64,000 bases of DNA from Piromyces finnis finn (Eukaryota; Fungi; Neocallimastigomycota). The notes beneath the pieces were generated by a model that did not search any database, had not been told where the DNA came from, and saw only the letters and a program-made list of their open reading frames with translations. A program made the translations under genes and the position numbers. The stretch spans positions 1 to 64,000 of the forward strand of contig MCFH01000062.1 of the NCBI GenBank assembly GCA_002104945.1, read 5' to 3'. Below, one piece after another: positions 363 to 9,997 of this stretch (position 1 is the stretch's first letter; every line of letters starts with the position of its first letter).

Positions 363-3300
363 TTATATACATTGAGAATACCAATCATTAATTTTTTTAC
401 AGGTACCAACTTGACAACAGGTACTACCACTGTAATTATTACCACCACATTGAGCGTATTGTGGAACACAATTTCCATTAGCAGCATTATTGCTTGCAGC
501 ATTATTACTAGCAGCGTCATTGTTGCCCCAGTAATTTCCATTGTTATTATTTTCCCAGTTACTATTGCCATTGCTATTCCAGCTGTTACCATTGTTACTA
601 TTATCCCAGTAATTGTTACCATTACTATTCCAGCTGTTGCCATTGTTACTATTATCCCAATAATTGTTACCATTACTATTCCAGTTGTTACCATTGTTGT
701 TACTACCCCAGTAAGAATTATTATTGTTATTACTTGGATTAGAGGTTGGAAGTGTTCCTGGACTATTTGATTGAATGGTCTTTGAATTAGATGTAGTAAC
801 AGGAACAGTTTTAACTCCAGTAGAAACAAATACGGTCTTAGTTATAGTTGAAGATGGTAAAGTTTTTGGACCGGTAGCAGTTGAAATAGTCTTAGTAATG
901 GTAACTGATGGTATAGTTTTTGCACCAGTAGAAATTTGAATAGTTTTGGAAGAAACAGGTAAAGTCTTAGCATTAGAAGAAATTGGTAAAGTCTTTCCAC
1001 TAGATGAGACTGGTAAGGTTTTAGCATTAGTAGTACCTGGTAAAGTCTTACCACTGGAAGAAACTGGTAAAGTCTTTCCACTAGAAGAGACTGGTAAGGT
1101 TTTAGCATTAGTAGTACCTGGTAAGGTCTTACCACTAGAAGAGACTGGTAAAGTCTTGGAAGCAGCAGCATTTCCAGTTGGTAAAGTCTTACCATTGGAA
1201 GAAACTGGTAAAGTCTTAGCATTAGAAGAAACTGGTAAAGTCTTACCACTGGAAGAAACTGGTAAGGTTTTAGCATTAGTAGTACCTGGTAAAGTCTTAC
1301 CACTGGAAGAAACAGGTAAAGTCTTAGCATTAGAAGAGACTGGTAAAGTCTTTCCACTGGAAGAAACTGGTAAAGTCTTACCACTAGATGAAACTGGTAA
1401 GGTCTTACCACTAGAAGAGACTGGTAAAGTCTTAGCATTAGTAGTACCTGGTAAGGTCTTACCACTAGAAGAGACTGGTAAGGTTTTAGCATTAGAAGAG
1501 ACTGGTAAGGTCTTAGCATTAGTAGTACCTGGTAAAGTCTTACCACTGGAAGAAACTGGTAAAGTCTTAGCATTAGTAGTACCTGGTAAAGTCTTACCAC
1601 TAGAAGAGACTGGTAAGGTCTTACCACTTGATGAGACTGGTAAAGTCTTACCACTAGATGAAACTGGTAAGGTTTTAGCATTAGTAGTACCTGGTAAGGT
1701 CTTACCACTAGAAGAGACTGGTAAAGTCTTAGCATTAGTAGTACCTGGTAAAGTCTTACCACTGGAAGAAACTGGTAAAGTCTTAGCATTAGAAGAGACT
1801 GGTAAAGTCTTACCACTGGAAGAAACTGGTAAAGTCTTAGCATTAGTAGTACCTGGTAAAGTCTTACCACTAGAAGAGACTGGTAAGGTCTTACCACTTG
1901 ATGAGACTGGTAAAGTCTTACCACTAGATGAAACTGGTAAGGTTTTAGCATTAGTAGTACCTGGTAAGGTCTTACCACTAGAAGAGACTGGTAAAGTCTT
2001 AGCATTAGTAGTACCTGGTAAAGTCTTACCACTGGAAGAAACTGGTAAAGTCTTAGCATTAGAAGAGACTGGTAAAGTCTTACCACTGGAAGAAACTGGT
2101 AAAGTCTTAGCATTAGTAGTACCTGGTAAAGTCTTACCACTAGAAGAGACTGGTAAGGTCTTACCACTTGATGAGACTGGTAAAGTCTTACCACTAGATG
2201 AAACTGGTAAGGTTTTAGCATTAGTAGTACCTGGTAAGGTCTTACCACTAGAAGAGACTGGTAAAGTCTTAGCATTAGTAGTACCTGGTAAAGTCTTACC
2301 ACTGGAAGAAACTGGTAAAGTCTTAGCATTAGAAGAGACTGGTAAAGTCTTACCACTGGAAGAAACTGGTAAGGTCTTACCACTAGAAGAGACTGGTAAA
2401 GTCTTAGCATTAGAAGAGACTGGTAAGGTCTTACCACTTGATGAGACTGGTAAAGTCTTACCACTAGATGAAACTGGTAAGGTTTTAGCATTAGTAGTAC
2501 CTGGTAAGGTCTTACCACTAGAAGAGACTGGTAAAGTCTTAGCATTAGTAGTACCTGGTAAAGTCTTACCACTGGAAGAAACTGGTAAAGTCTTACCACT
2601 AGATGAAACTGGTAAGGTCTTACCACTAGAAGAGACTGGTAAAGTCTTAGCATTAGTAGTACCTGGTAAGGTCTTACCACTAGAAGAGACTGGTAAGGTT
2701 TTAGCATTAGAAGAGACTGGTAAGGTCTTAGCATTAGTAGTACCTGGTAAAGTCTTACCACTGGAAGAAACTGGTAAAGTCTTAGCATTAGTAGTACCTG
2801 GTAAAGTTTTACCACTGGAAGAAACTGGTAAAGTCTTAGCATTAGTAGTACCTGGTAAAGTCTTACCACTAGAAGAGACTGGTAAGGTCTTACCACTTGA
2901 TGAGACTGGTAAAGTCTTACCACTAGATGAAACTGGTAAGGTTTTAGCATTAGTAGTACCTGGTAAGGTCTTACCACTAGAAGAGACTGGTAAAGTCTTG
3001 GAAGCAGCAGCATTTCCAGTTGGTAAAGTCTTACCACTGGAAGAAACTGGTAAAGTCTTAGCATTAGAAGAAACTGGTAAAGTCTTACCACTTGATGAGA
3101 CTGGTAAAGTCTTACCACTGGAAGAAACTGGTAAAGTCTTAGCATTAGTAGTACCTGGTAAAGTCTTACCACTGGAAGAAACTGGTAAAGTCTTACCACT
3201 GGAAGAAACTGGTAAGGTCTTACCACTAGAAGAGACTGGTAAAGTCTTAGCATTAGAAGAGACTGGTAAGGTCTTACCACTTGATGAGACTGGTAAAGTC

Positions 3301-4445
3301 TTACCACTAGATGAAACTGGTAAGGTTTTAGCATTAGTAGTACCTGGTAAGGTCTTACCACTAGAAGAGACTGGTAAAGTCTTAGCATTAGTAGTACCTG
3401 GTAAAGTCTTACCACTGGAAGAAACTGGTAAAGTCTTACCACTAGATGAAACTGGTAAGGTCTTACCACTAGAAGAGACTGGTAAAGTCTTAGCATTAGT
3501 AGTACCTGGTAAGGTCTTACCACTAGAAGAGACTGGTAAGGTTTTAGCATTAGAAGAGACTGGTAAGGTCTTAGCATTAGTAGTACCTGGTAAAGTCTTA
3601 CCACTGGAAGAAACTGGTAAAGTCTTAGCATTAGAAGAAACTGGTAAAGTCTTAGCATTGGAAGCGACTGGTAAAGACTTAGAGTTGGAGGATTGAGAAC
3701 CACTACCACCAATATATACCTTAGCGTATGGGAAATCAGCAGTACCAGAAGTACCTGATCCAACACTTCCAGCTTCACCTAATACTTTTGCTTCATACAT
3801 TTTACCCATTTTCATACCAAGTTCAGCCCATTTATCAAAGTGAGCTGTAATATCAATTGTACCACAATCACGAGCTTCCTTACGAATACTGAAGAATTGT
3901 TTGAAATTTGTATCTCCAACAATGGATGGTCCATAACGTTCATTTTCATAAATGGTATATTCAGCACCATCAATAGTATAATCACCGTGTTTTTTATTTC
4001 CAACCCAATCTCCTGGACGATATTGACTTAGCCAATTATCAACAATATAGTATTCAACAAGTGGTTCCTGAGTCCAACCATAAATACCTACATAGGAATA
4101 ATCGACATTGGAAATACTTTGCTTAACTAGTTTAAAGTCAGCATATAAATGACCTATTTGATCATATGTTTGAGTACTATCAAAGGAAAGACCGGAACGA
4201 CATAAGTAATCTTTTGAATTTTCAAATTTACATGTAAATGAACCATCTGAATAGAAAGTAGCACTATTTTCACCACCATCGAACCAAATTTCATATCCAA
4301 TATCACCTATCATACCATATTTACATGTTGTTTCTTTAATACTTTCACCTGTATGACCAGTTGCTGAACAGAAACTTTGAGCTTTTACAAAGCATACTGA
4401 AGATGCCAATGATAATAATATATTAACAAATTTAGAATACTTCAT
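363..4445 (-). CDS. Secreted GH11 endo-1,4-beta-xylanase with a very long KTLP-repeat linker, an Asn/Trp-rich segment and a C-terminal CBM1
   Basis: Intronless 1360-aa ORF with a signal peptide. GH11 motifs [13 protein letters not shown] (nucleophile E131), GPSI and [10 protein letters not shown] (acid/base E224). C-terminal [21 protein letters not shown] is a CBM1. Confidence 0.95.
946..3690 (-). repeat. Coding minisatellite of about 100 x 27 bp (KTLPVSSSG / KTLPGTTNA / KTLPVSSNA) with two 33-bp [11 protein letters not shown] variants
   Basis: Seen directly. The marker ttaccacttgatgag recurs at 1621, 1891, 2161 and 2431, a 270-bp higher-order period. Confidence 0.97.
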
Positions 4446-7130
4446 TTTGTATATATAGTATTATTTAATGTAGTATTAAATAAAAAATAAAGCAATTTTT
4501 TAACAATACTACCACAAAACAAAATTAATAATACAAATTAAAAAAAAAATTTTTTTTTAAAAGAAAAATTAATTTTTTATATTTTTTTCAAGTATAATAT
4601 TGTTTCTATATTTAATTGTACAACACTATATTCTAATCTATTATGTTCAAGTATGAGTAATTAAATTAATATTATTAATGTAAGAATCAGTTTAAATAAA
4701 AACTATTTTTATTTCAAATAATTATTATTAACTAGTTTCATAATCCTTTTTTTAAAATTAATTAAAAGAAATATAATATGAAATAAAATTAAAAATTTAG
4801 AAAGTATTAGTTTAGTATATTATAAGGTTTAAGTTAGAGTTTACTATTTCTATATGATATTTCAATACATTTGTAACTTTTTTATTTATTTCTTGAAAGC
4901 ATTTTTAGTAATTTTTTTTAATGAAAACTAGAATTTATTATTATATAATGTTTTAATGTTTTATTACAATTATATATAAATATATACATATTATTCAAAC
5001 TATTTTATATATATATACATTATTTATGATTATATGATTATAAATTAATAGATTTATTTTGTATATCTAACCCACTCTTATATGCAAGAAATATAGATGT
5101 TATTTTTTGTTTTATATATACAAATTAATAGAAATATTAATTTTAAAAGCAATTATCACTACATAATATATTTATAATATTTTTATTTCTTTATCTATCC
5201 TCTTTATATATTTTTATTCAGTTTACTCATCAAAAATCAAAAGAATATATGGTGATTTAAAAAAATATATAATTTAAAATACTCATAAGAATTAAAGTTT
5301 AATTTTTTTTTTTAAGTTATTTTTTAGTTTCAGTTTTATTTTTTTTTATATTTAGAATAGATATTTTATATTATTTTATTTAAAAAGTTTTATTAAAAAT
5401 TTTTAAAAATATTATACTTTTTAAGTATAGACATTAACTTTTTTTATACAAACTTTTTTAATTTAAAAGTCAACTTTTTTTTTTAGTCAATAAAGTTGTA
5501 TATTCAATTTGAAACAAAGACATTCTTGGTTTTATTATAAGAAAAAAACAAGAATAATCATGTGTATATAATCATAATTATCCATATATATATACCTTTT
5601 TTTTTGAATAATAAACAATAATTGATTACCATTTTTTTTTCTTTCGTATAAATTACTAGTTTTATTCTTATTTAAATTTAAAATCGAAAAGGTTCTACAG
5701 AAAATAAATTATTCAATCTTTAAAAAGACTATTAAGATATTTTAAATTTATATGTATTTAAAATATAAGAGTAAATAAAAATGAAGTAATTTATATCATA
5801 ATAATTAATTTTTTTTGAGTTTCCAGTCCTATATAATATTTAAACACTTTTATAATTTTTCATATTTTAATATAAATTTTTTTGAGATTCATGAATTCAA
5901 TATATCAATTCTAATATTATCCTCTCTTTCATTTATATTTTTTTTTTTGATATAAAAAGCTTATATTATGTATATGTTAATCAATACTTAATCCTTTTAC
6001 TGAATTTATTTTTTTTAGAATTTTATTAAAGATAAAAAAAAAAAAAGATTTAGGAATTGATGGAAAATAATAAGTAGATAATAGATAATAGTTCATGTTA
6101 AATTTTATAAAAGATTTATTTTTTTATAACATAATACATTAATATCATAAATAAGATTTTTTAAAATGTGAAAAAAAAGAAATAAATAAAATAATGCTGT
6201 GATAAATCTAAAAAAAAAAAAAGTAGATTGTTTGGAAAAGAATATTTTTCTATGGGCGTTCTTAATAATTTAATTAAATGGTAAATCAACAGTGGAAGCA
6301 TACCAAATTTTAATTAAAGTTTTGAAAATCAAAGGAAAAAAAAAAAACGAGCTTAAGTCAAATATGATAAATTTAATGAAAATTATAAACTATTTAAAAT
6401 AAAATAGGTTAATGAACAACAAATTTATTGAATATGTCATTTTTAATTTTTATTGTAGACAAACGAAAGATGTAATAATTTTCTTTAATATTATTACTTT
6501 TATATTTAAGCAACAATGATTAAAAACTTTTATTTATGCTTAATCGTACTAAATATATAAAATTAACCTATTTTTAATTATAATAATCGTCAACTTTTTT
6601 AAATTCCTGAATATTTAATTTAAATAGAAATTAACCACATTTTTTTTTTTTAAATTAAATTATAAAATTCATTGGATGTGAATGAAAAATAAAGAATTAA
6701 TTTTTATATTTTTAGGTATTAAAAATAAGAAATTAATAAAAAAGAAGCTTTACTATTTGTTAAAAGAAAATCTATTAAATAAATAATTTTTATAAATAAA
6801 AATGAAAATAAAATTAAAATAATGAAAAGAATAATCATTAATTAAACATTAATTTGTGAAATAATTTGAATTTTTTTTTTAATTGTTTAAATGATAATCC
6901 TAATTAAAATAAAATGGTTTAAAACAAGGTTAATATAAGTAATTACATTGTACTATGAAATAATTAATATGAATTTTAATATATTTTAATATTTTTGTGT
7001 TATGAAATCAATATTATTTAATAGTTAACTATTTTCATTTTATATATTTTTAATTGTAAAATGAAACTGCCATTTGTTTTTTTTTTTTTAACATTCTTCT
7101 TATAATAATTATAAAATTGTAAATAAAAAA

Positions 7131-8414
7131 ATGAAAAAATATTCATTAATTAAATCATTACTATCTATTATTGTATCGACAAACATCACAAATGCCTACC
7201 AATTTTGTAATAAAATAGAGCATACGGGTGAAAGTGTTGTTGAAATGACTTATAATGCTGGTAAAATTGGTGGAATAGATTATGATTTATGGTTCAAAGA
7301 AGGTATAAATTCTGCAACATTTTATAGTGATGGTTCAATGACATGTTCTTTTCAAGATACTATGAATTATATGTGCCGTACAGGTATTAAATTTGATAGT
7401 ACAAAAACATTTAATCAAATTGGACATTTATATGCAGACTTTAAATATATTGAAAATAATAATAGTAATGTAGACTATTCATATATCGGTGTCTACGGTT
7501 TAACCAAACATCCACAAATCGAATTTTATATAGTAGAAAATTGGATTGGTGATAATCACCCGGAAAATGATACTTTTGGAAAAAATTATGGTGATTTTAT
7601 TATTAATGGTGAAGAATATACAATTTATGAAAGTGAACCAGTTGGTAAATCGATTAATGGTGAAACACCATATAAAAAATTTTATAGTTTTCGTAAAACT
7701 CCAAGTTCATGTGGTTCTATTGATATTACAGCACATTTTGAACAATGGGATAATATAGGTTTAACATTAGGTTATTTATATGAAGCTAAAGTTTTTGCTC
7801 AAGTGGGAAGTTATAATTTAGGAACATCCGGTTCAATTGATTTCCCCTATGCATTAGTTTATGTTAAAGATGGTATTGAAAACAAAAAAGTACTTACTTT
7901 TAATGCCATTCCAACCACTTCAATAGAATCTAATACTATTAATGAAATAATACCAACAGTATCAACAGAATATAACTATAATGAAAATAGTAATGCTAAT
8001 AGTTATGATTTATATAATAATGGAGAAATTACTGTCACAAAGGTAATTTCATCAATTACTGAGTCTATAATTGAAACAGAAGCTCCATATGATATAAGTA
8101 AAGAAAATGATATTAATTTTATATTAGCAGCTGAAACTGTAGAACCAGAAGAAACCTATATAATACCAGATTATATTCCACCTTCTTCAACCATTATAAG
8201 AAAAGAAACTTATTTACCACCCATTATTAACGAGGAATATGTAGATAATACCATTTTACAAGATGGAAATAATGAAGAAAGTAAAAAAGTAGAAAATGAT
8301 AATTGTGTTCCGCTCTATGGTCAATGTGGGGGAAAAGACTATAATGGTAGTACCTGTTGTAAGGAAGGAAAATGTGCATATTTAAATGAATGGTATTATC
8401 AATGTATCCTTTAA
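7131..8414 (+). CDS. GH11 xylanase-like protein with CBM1; acid/base Glu replaced by Gln (probable pseudoenzyme)
   Basis: 427-aa ORF with a signal peptide that aligns residue-for-residue with the neighbouring GH11 domain. IEFYIVENW (E131) is kept, but EAKVFAQVG carries Q224. C-terminal CBM1 CVPLYGQCGG...EWYYQCIL. Confidence 0.92.
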   Translation: MKKYSLIKSLLSIIVSTNITNAYQFCNKIEHTGESVVEMTYNAGKIGGIDYDLWFKEGINSATFYSDGSMTCSFQDTMNYMCRTGIKFDSTKTFNQIGHLYADFKYIENNNSNVDYSYIGVYGLTKHPQIEFYIVENWIGDNHPENDTFGKNYGDFIINGEEYTIYESEPVGKSINGETPYKKFYSFRKTPSSCGSIDITAHFEQWDNIGLTLGYLYEAKVFAQVGSYNLGTSGSIDFPYALVYVKDGIENKKVLTFNAIPTTSIESNTINEIIPTVSTEYNYNENSNANSYDLYNNGEITVTKVISSITESIIETEAPYDISKENDINFILAAETVEPEETYIIPDYIPPSSTIIRKETYLPPIINEEYVDNTILQDGNNEESKKVENDNCVPLYGQCGGKDYNGSTCCKEGKCAYLNEWYYQCIL

Positions 8415-8952
8415 TCACTCGAAATTCTATAAAGTTATTTATTTTCAAATTTATTTACAAATTTATAACAGCAAAATTATAAATTTAATTAATAAGAATA
8501 TAAAATATCAAAAATGTGTAAAAATTTTTTTATTTTAATAATTATTAATGTATATAATTTATTTATTATGTTAAATAAAAAGAAATATAAAAATGGAAAA
8601 GTATTAATATTGTTTTTGAATTAATGTTCATGAACTAAAATAATAAATAATATTAAGTTCATTTTAACTTTAATTGTTTTTTTATAATCCATCAAAACTA
8701 TTAAAAAAAAAAGAGAAAAAAAAAGAGAGAATAATTAAAAAGATCATTCTTAAATCATTCCTTAATAATAAAAATATTCTATTCTCTACTTTTAATAATA
8801 ATTTGAGAAACATTAATATGCTTATTAATAATTCAATCAATTTTGTAGAAGATTAAATATATCAATGATGAATTAATATAAATCCTAAATTTTTGACGAT
8901 TTTAGCCAGACTTTTTTTCAAAATTTTCATTATTATTAACTCTAGTTCTACT

Positions 8953-9352
<400 letters not shown>

Positions 9353-9997
9353 CTATAATAATAGATAATAAAATCATTAATGAATATTACAATATTTCCC
9401 TTTCTATTGTTGTAACTTTAGCCATTGTTGGTATATAGAAAATTGTTATATTATTTGTATATAATTTATTTCATTTATACTATATAATTTATTATATTTA
9501 AATTTTAATATATAATTAATTAAAATATACGAATGAAAATAAATTAAAAGTATTTTTTTTTTTTGTTTTAAATTATTTCCATTTTTATATTTATTAGAAA
9601 AAAGAAAGCTTAAATTATAATAAAATAAAATCTGGTCAATATTTTTTTATTGGTAAAAGTTTTTAATTTGATGCCGTTAACCATTACACAAAATTGTGTT
9701 TTTACTTTTTTTTTTTTTTTCATTTTTTATAATTAATTAAAAAAAAAAAAAATATAAATAGGAATTAAATATTCTTTTTTATTGTTTTTACTTTTTTTTT
9801 AAATTCTGTTTTGTTTTTTATGTATATATAACTTTTTATTTTTTTAAAAAATTTTTAAAATTACTCTAAATTTATGATAAATAATTTGAATGAAAAAACA
9901 ATTTAATAAGAATATTAAAAGAAGAAAGTGAAAGAAGAGTAATTCAACTAACAACAATTTCATATTATCATTAAAGTAAAAAAAAAAAAAAAAAAAA

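Follow-up and report, generated by a model that had tools for sequence, protein, structure and literature searches.

A GH11 xylanase homologue of Piromyces finnis with glutamine at the acid/base position, conserved in related gut fungi

Dead paralogues of wall-degrading enzymes are already known, among them the GH12 protein XLP1 and the GH28 proteins of leaf beetles. In Phytophthora sojae the inactive secreted paralogue PsXLP1 stands beside an active wall-degrading enzyme (PMC8960721), an arrangement that the gene described here resembles. This gene lies in a stretch of 64,000 nucleotides from Piromyces finnis (contig MCFH01000062.1, positions 1 to 64,000), which we call the window and whose proteins match those of anaerobic gut fungi best. 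Unlike the window gene, PsXLP1 belongs to GH12 and was inactivated by a C-terminal deletion, not by substitution. It also serves a plant pathogen against the inhibitor of a living host, and its inhibitor binding has been demonstrated, whereas the window protein is known from sequence. The GH28 pseudoenzymes of Phaedon cochleariae share with the window gene that they are dead but intact paralogues from an expanded wall-degrading family in a herbivore gut setting; they differ from it in their animal genome, their fold, their connection with pectin, the lack of a CBM and the experimental test of their importance (PMC6549527). A limited literature search found no published GH11 pseudoenzyme.

The closest solved relative is XynCDBFV of Neocallimastix patriciarum (3WP4, 3WP5 and 3WP6), with about 49% identity to the window domain. 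The two proteins have in common a long N-terminal region, the cysteines of a disulfide-stabilised fold and the nucleophile (PMC5442702). Where XynCDBFV has E202, its partner Asp, P151 and the cleft Trp, Arg and Gln, however, the window protein has Gln, Asn, Lys, Leu, Pro and Lys, respectively. The same acid/base Glu-to-Gln change as in the window protein and its relatives is found in the E177Q form of Trichoderma reesei XynII (4HK8). XynII E177Q is an engineered single mutant with an otherwise intact cleft, whereas the natural clade is changed at 12-15 near-invariant positions.

Few organisms in nature break down raw plant fibre as well as anaerobic gut fungi, whose genomes are searched for enzymes through counts of CAZy domains. 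Some of the GH11 xylanases so counted appear to be conserved non-enzymes, so that automatic annotation would overstate catalytic capacity. The gene would also represent a GH11-derived helper protein kept by selection in fibre-degrading fungi. Because the protein is small, its gene intronless and a close relative solved, tests of activity, binding and synergy are straightforward; if the binding proposed below is true, the protein could serve as a natural probe for xylan or as an accessory in enzyme cocktails.

Gene, fold and active-site residues

The coordinates of the gene and its parts are collected in Table 1. At the local intergenic composition, the chance of an open frame of 427 codons is about 2e-21. 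Pfam matched GH11 (PF00457) to residues 50-230 with 87 bits (cut-off 27) and CBM1 to residues 395-422 with 41 bits (cut-off 20.6). The signal-peptide region has aligned counterparts at the N-termini of the three orthologues and the active neighbour, and the GH11 domain carries the fold cysteines C26, C72, C82 and C194. The original prediction had described the signal peptide, cysteines, CBM1 and frame as intact, and we found all of them so, the signal peptide being judged by eye.

The best solved relative in our search was 3WP4 (XynCDBFV), at an E value of 1.5e-77. An AlphaFold2 model, run with a 35-row alignment, had a pLDDT above 90 over residues 30-246; the linker was predicted to be disordered and CBM1 was modelled at low confidence, which we attribute to the thin coverage of CBM1 in the alignment. 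Foldseek placed the model on 3WP4 with a TM-score (by target) of 0.95 and an rmsd of 1.6 Å. The predicted GH11 fold of the window protein is thus a confident one.

A linker of about 150 residues separates GH11 from CBM1. Most of it is fast-evolving, and an acidic block around Y-D-I-x-K-E-x-D and E-T-V-E-P is kept in 4/4 taxa of the clade described below. The pLDDT of this block is below 50 save for a short stretch at 344-348, and a word search, the ESM Atlas and Pfam returned no relatives of it outside the clade. The CBM1 cysteines and the aromatic residues of Y..WYYQC are invariant across the same four taxa.

Table 1. Coordinates of the Gln-type gene and its parts, its neighbour and its orthologues. 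Positions without a locus name are those of the window.
Feature	Position	Strand	Remarks
Gln-type GH11 gene, whole	7131..8414	+	427 aa plus stop; intronless; open throughout
Putative signal peptide, residues 1-22	7131..7196	+	Precedes 7197; ends in TNA before YQFC; by eye
GH11 β-jelly-roll domain, residues 23-246	7197..7868	+	Pfam, 3WP4 relative, AlphaFold2, Foldseek
Asn79	7365..7367	+	AAT; Asp in 98.8% of Glu-type domains
Leu124	7500..7502	+	TTA; in place of the Trp of YGW (reads YGL); window lineage only, three orthologues have Trp
Glu131	7521..7523	+	GAA; nucleophile position kept (E109 of XynCDBFV)
Base of thumb, Pro170 and Lys173	7638..7649	+	CCA (7638-7640), Pro170 for the cleft Arg, window lineage only; AAA (7647-7649), Lys173 for the thumb Pro, with K, N, H or D across the clade
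Lys183	7677..7679	+	AAA; in place of a Gln invariant in Glu-type domains; K, R, R, S across the clade
Gln224	7800..7802	+	CAA; acid/base position (E202 of XynCDBFV), within the clade-specific F-A-Q-V motif
Conserved acidic linker block, residues 318-377	8082..8261	+	Alignment; clade-specific; predicted disordered
CBM1 cellulose-binding module, residues 390-426	8298..8408	+	Pfam
Active-type neighbour	363..4445	-	Divergent; GH11 (3708-4379), tandem-repeat linker of about 1000 residues, CBM1
Intergenic spacer between both start codons	4446..7130	.	13-17% G+C
Orthologue, uncultured relative	L001:8001-9488		Intact; contigs from six enrichment metagenomes (L001-L006)
Orthologue, Piromyces sp. E2	L007:8001-9440		KZ150826.1; intact, 479 codons from Met to stop
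Orthologue, uncultured relative	L008:1-1395		Single JGI contig; intact

The catalytic residues of XynCDBFV are E109 and E202, and its conserved thumb proline is P151 (PMC5442702); these correspond to window positions 131, 224 and 173. The narrowest part of the GH11 cleft is formed by the thumb Pro together with the Trp equivalent to W54 (PMC5442702). The residue aligned with position 79 is Asp in XynCDBFV and Asn in a Bacillus GH11, and in the B. circulans xylanase Asn35 hydrogen-bonds the acid/base catalyst (PMC4498622). With Asn79 and Gln224 the Asp-Glu pair has become an Asn-Gln pair, which should have the same shape and no proton to give. Overall, the window domain differs from the family at 14/50 near-invariant positions. 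Tyr133, the Tyr that follows the nucleophile, is retained in the window and is F, L and L in the orthologues.

The GH11 domains of the window gene and of its active-type neighbour align over 245 residues without gaps, at 52% identity. Every residue given in the original prediction is present in the sequence, with E131/E224 in the neighbour and E131/Q224 in the window gene. The neighbour is of the catalytically intact type, as had been claimed; besides Glu131 and Glu224 it has the consensus residue at 50/50 near-invariant positions. The cleft damage listed for the window gene is likewise all there. E224Q and the losses of the thumb Pro and the conserved Gln extend through the clade, but W124L and R170P are specific to the window lineage. 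The paired D79N change was absent from that list and is fixed in the clade.

Four public runs, belonging to three studies, have contigs that cover the gene. None differs from the assembly at 7800-7802, and the GAA codon that would have spoken against the original prediction is absent from these contigs. One of the runs (X4) differs from the assembly at two other sites of the gene, 7666 C>T (T179I) and 8038 C>A (T303K), and is therefore independent of it; both differences are non-synonymous and none is synonymous, numbers too small to interpret. Gln224 is not an assembly error.

The Gln-type clade and its selective constraint

A word-based search recovered three intact orthologues, from Piromyces sp. 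E2 and from two uncultured relatives (Table 1). They are 60-71% identical to the window protein in the GH11 domain, and all of them have the same Gln within F-A-Q-V. Conservation of Gln224 in other gut fungi, which had been suggested as a check, was thus seen in 3/3 orthologues. The E2 orthologue was scored as intact because 479 codons can be read in one frame without interruption. Its division at NCBI into two models, a 'partial' GH11 protein of 246 aa and a CBM1 protein of 193 aa, looks like a gene-model error.

We aligned 274 GH11 domains, taken from hits and loci, to one profile. Gln stood at the acid/base position in the four taxa only, and Glu in 161/161 other non-identical domains. Fifty positions, each at least 97% conserved in those 161 domains, were defined as near-invariant. 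Each clade member deviates at 12-15 of them, and the Glu-type domains deviate at a mean of 0.26. All four members share seven fixed changes (D79N, L139I, N150G, K208N, L222F, E224Q and A225V). Another 39 family-conserved positions are unchanged in all four, including W54, Y122, R188, the four Cys and the nucleophile Glu131. W124, Y133, Q183, F185, N168 and the thumb Pro are constrained in active enzymes and variable within the clade.

The four sequences formed a clade with support of 100/100, whose stem measured 0.64 substitutions per site, against about 0.05 for a typical internal branch. The tree placed this clade inside the gut-fungal GH11 radiation and not as sister to the neighbour gene. 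The terminal branch of the window copy was 0.30, and that of its sister 0.13. As for the sister group of the clade, one tree joined it to domain 1 of the E2 protein P0009, a placement that may reflect long-branch attraction and dissolved in a second tree.

The clade is known from four taxa, which is a small sample. No further Gln-type member was found among 32 loci encoding relatives (of 208 pattern matches) in a metagenome scan. A profile search with the four-member alignment likewise returned none among 5.8 billion proteins of 235-747 aa, a size range from which longer or shorter relatives would escape.

Other gut-fungal GH11 domains keep both catalytic Glu and are without several near-invariant cleft residues. 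They include both domains of P0009 from Piromyces sp. E2, three domains of P0121 and residues 193-416 of P0001. Their changes comprise replacement of the YGW Trp by T, K or L, changes of Tyr and, in one of them, thumb deletions. Degenerate GH11 domains may be more widespread than the Gln-type clade.

Selection was estimated on the four-taxon tree with a custom-written codon likelihood model (GY94 F3x4). For the GH11 domain ω was 0.087, and ω = 1 was rejected (2ΔlnL 252). On the terminal branch of the window copy the domain had an ω of 0.105, again with rejection of ω = 1 (2ΔlnL 21.6), and this value was not different from the rest of the tree. The conserved linker block (ω 0.09, 2ΔlnL 56.6) and CBM1 (ω 0.05, 2ΔlnL 43.4) also rejected ω = 1. 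Between the window and L001 the Gln-type gene had a dN of 0.135-0.156 and an ω of 0.09-0.34, depending on the method; for the active neighbour the corresponding ranges were 0.06-0.07 and 0.06-0.12.

About 5.9% of single substitutions in the Gln-type reading frame create a stop, so that survival of the open frame under neutrality is improbable. Along a neutral branch of 0.1-0.3 substitutions per site, the probability of a frame that is still open falls from 5e-4 to 1e-10. Neutral decay of the orthologues, which the original prediction had named as a finding that would speak against it, is not what these data indicate. Because the frames are open in four taxa, ω is low and ω = 1 is rejected, the gene is under selection and not decaying, and it is probably a pseudo-xylanase.

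Possible functions of a non-hydrolytic GH11 protein

The explanation that we favour, with moderate confidence, is that the gene encodes a secreted, non-hydrolytic GH11 descendant, kept by selection, which binds a wall polysaccharide through its cleft and is anchored by CBM1. The pseudo-xylanase would have arisen once, before at least four Piromyces-like lineages split, and would have been under purifying selection since. The acid/base Glu and its Asp partner have given way to amides, Gln224 and Asn79, a pair expected to remove proton transfer and roughly to keep shape and hydrogen bonding. The fold, the cysteines, the glycone-side aromatics (W54 and Y122) and the nucleophile Glu are conserved, with residues near subsites -1/+1 and at the thumb tip freed to vary. 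The remodelled cleft would then hold a wall polysaccharide, probably xylan or a chain resembling it, and the C-terminal CBM1 would anchor the protein on cellulose.

A crystal structure of the acid/base Glu-to-Gln mutant of T. reesei XynII shows a Michaelis complex with intact xylohexaose (4HK8; PMC5811086, PMC7693232). Since 4HK8 holds uncut xylohexaose, the Glu-to-Gln change by itself lets the substrate bind without being cleaved. From the conservation of the fold, CBM1, the glycone-side aromatics and the isosteric amide pair we infer a cellulose-anchored binding protein. Such a protein should be secreted and inactive on xylan, and by binding its ligand it could loosen the wall, cross-link it or target substrate. 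Because the -1/+1 residues Y133, Q183, F185 and the thumb Pro vary in the clade and W124 and R170 are lost in the window copy, xylan may be bound only weakly in the classical manner, and the actual ligand or mode of binding may not be that of classical xylanases. The roles at subsites -1/+1 that we give to Y133, Q183, F185, the thumb Pro and others are presumed to be those of the B. circulans xylanase. A bolder version, which we regard as speculative and improbable, takes the fixed Asn79/Gln224 pair and the retained nucleophile as an adaptation. The protein might then be a CBM1-tethered xylan clamp that pries xylan off cellulose microfibrils in the manner of an expansin, or might use acid/base chemistry borne by a substrate or cofactor, with the acidic linker block as a second functional element.

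Residual or altered catalysis is an unlikely alternative, in which the protein would act on substrates that need no acid, would draw on an acid/base from outside or on the substrate itself, or would catalyse transfer in preference to hydrolysis. A Gln at the acid/base position is found in the GH1 myrosinases, which work in a comparable way. The invariance of Glu131 in 4/4 members, the strong constraint on the clade and the isosteric rather than destructive nature of the Glu-to-Gln and Asp-to-Asn changes are consistent with such an activity. A conserved new chemistry would, however, be expected to fix Y133, Q183 and the thumb Pro, and these positioners of the nucleophile and the -1 sugar are not conserved in the clade; the Lys or Arg at position 183 in three members could also pair with or cap Glu131. 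Loss of constraint at many cleft positions would fit a role unrelated to the old cleft, with GH11 as a scaffold for protein-protein or surface interaction, perhaps together with the acidic linker block. That block resembles a short linear binding motif in being clade-specific, constrained (ω 0.09) and predicted to be disordered. We nevertheless consider a pure scaffold quite unlikely, as neither the glycone-side aromatics nor the amide pair vary, CBM1 suggests a cell-wall setting, and the word search, ESM Atlas and Pfam yielded no partner or motif for the block.

The original prediction had also proposed that the protein could soak up the plant xylanase inhibitors TAXI and XIP, and so shield the active neighbour as PsXLP1 does for PsXEG1. 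The precedent is real (PMC8960721), the dead and active paralogues lie head-to-head in both the window and L001, and each carries CBM1, so that they would co-localise on fibre. The proposal is weakened, however, by the behaviour of tested gut-fungal GH11 enzymes, all of them from Neocallimastix: a review table enters N. patriciarum XynA as insensitive to TAXI and XIP-I, and a Neocallimastix Xyn1B as XIP-resistant (PMC9739030). Moreover, the surfaces touched by inhibitors, the thumb and the -1/+1 cleft residues, differ among clade members, no GH11 gene lies within 8 kb of the E2 orthologue, and the dead clade is not sister to the neighbour, which makes the two old paralogues and not a recent pair. 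An inhibitor decoy is therefore doubtful in our judgement. The idea that the gene is a young pseudogene, open by chance, or that codon 224 is a sequencing or assembly error can draw on the faster rate of the window copy than of its sister (0.30 vs 0.13) and on its extra losses, W124L and R170P. We reject it as extremely improbable: ω = 1 is rejected on the window's own branch, the probability of escaping a stop under neutrality is at most 5e-4, CAA is read in contigs of four runs of which one is a variant strain, and the same Gln occurs in three other taxa. Binding without cutting remains our preferred explanation, and it corresponds to the other option given in the original prediction, a binding protein.

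The active neighbour and the surrounding sequence

The start codons of the neighbour (4445, minus strand) and of the Gln-type gene (7131, plus strand) are 2685 bp apart and divergent, which agrees with the head-to-head arrangement described in the original prediction. No ORF of 80 aa or more was found within the spacer between them. G+C content in the region is 13-17% between genes and 23-40% within genes. In L001-L005 the window's active neighbour has its orthologue (87% identical) upstream on the opposite strand, so that head-to-head pairing with an active gene was seen in 2/3 available genomic contexts, the window and L001-L005; the E2 contig is the third.

Just upstream of the Gln-type gene a Phage_lysozyme2-like gene is present in L001 (5873-6385, between both GH11 genes) and in L007 (5354-5774), and it is absent from the window spacer at 4446-7130. 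Downstream, a gene for an ABC2-type membrane protein is common to L001 and E2 and not found in the window. The linker of the window's active neighbour, at about 700-3650 on the minus strand, consists of near-perfect tandem nonapeptides in which K-T-L-P-V-S-S-S-G alternates with K-T-L-P-G-T-T-N-A. The product of its L001 orthologue is longer still, at least 1539 aa.

The GC3 of the Gln-type gene is 0.116 and that of the active neighbour 0.147, a difference that hints, weakly at best, at lower expression than in the neighbour. Of the four runs that contain the gene, none is recorded as RNA. Contig ends near the ends of the gene were considered as a sign of expression and set aside, since they could equally be assembly breaks in AT-rich DNA.

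Beyond the Gln-type gene, a low-complexity tract with 4.6% G+C extends over 8952-9377 and includes a repeat at 8972-9075. On its minus strand it contains a 141-codon ORF of poly-Tyr and poly-Ile. This tract is almost certainly a microsatellite and not a gene.
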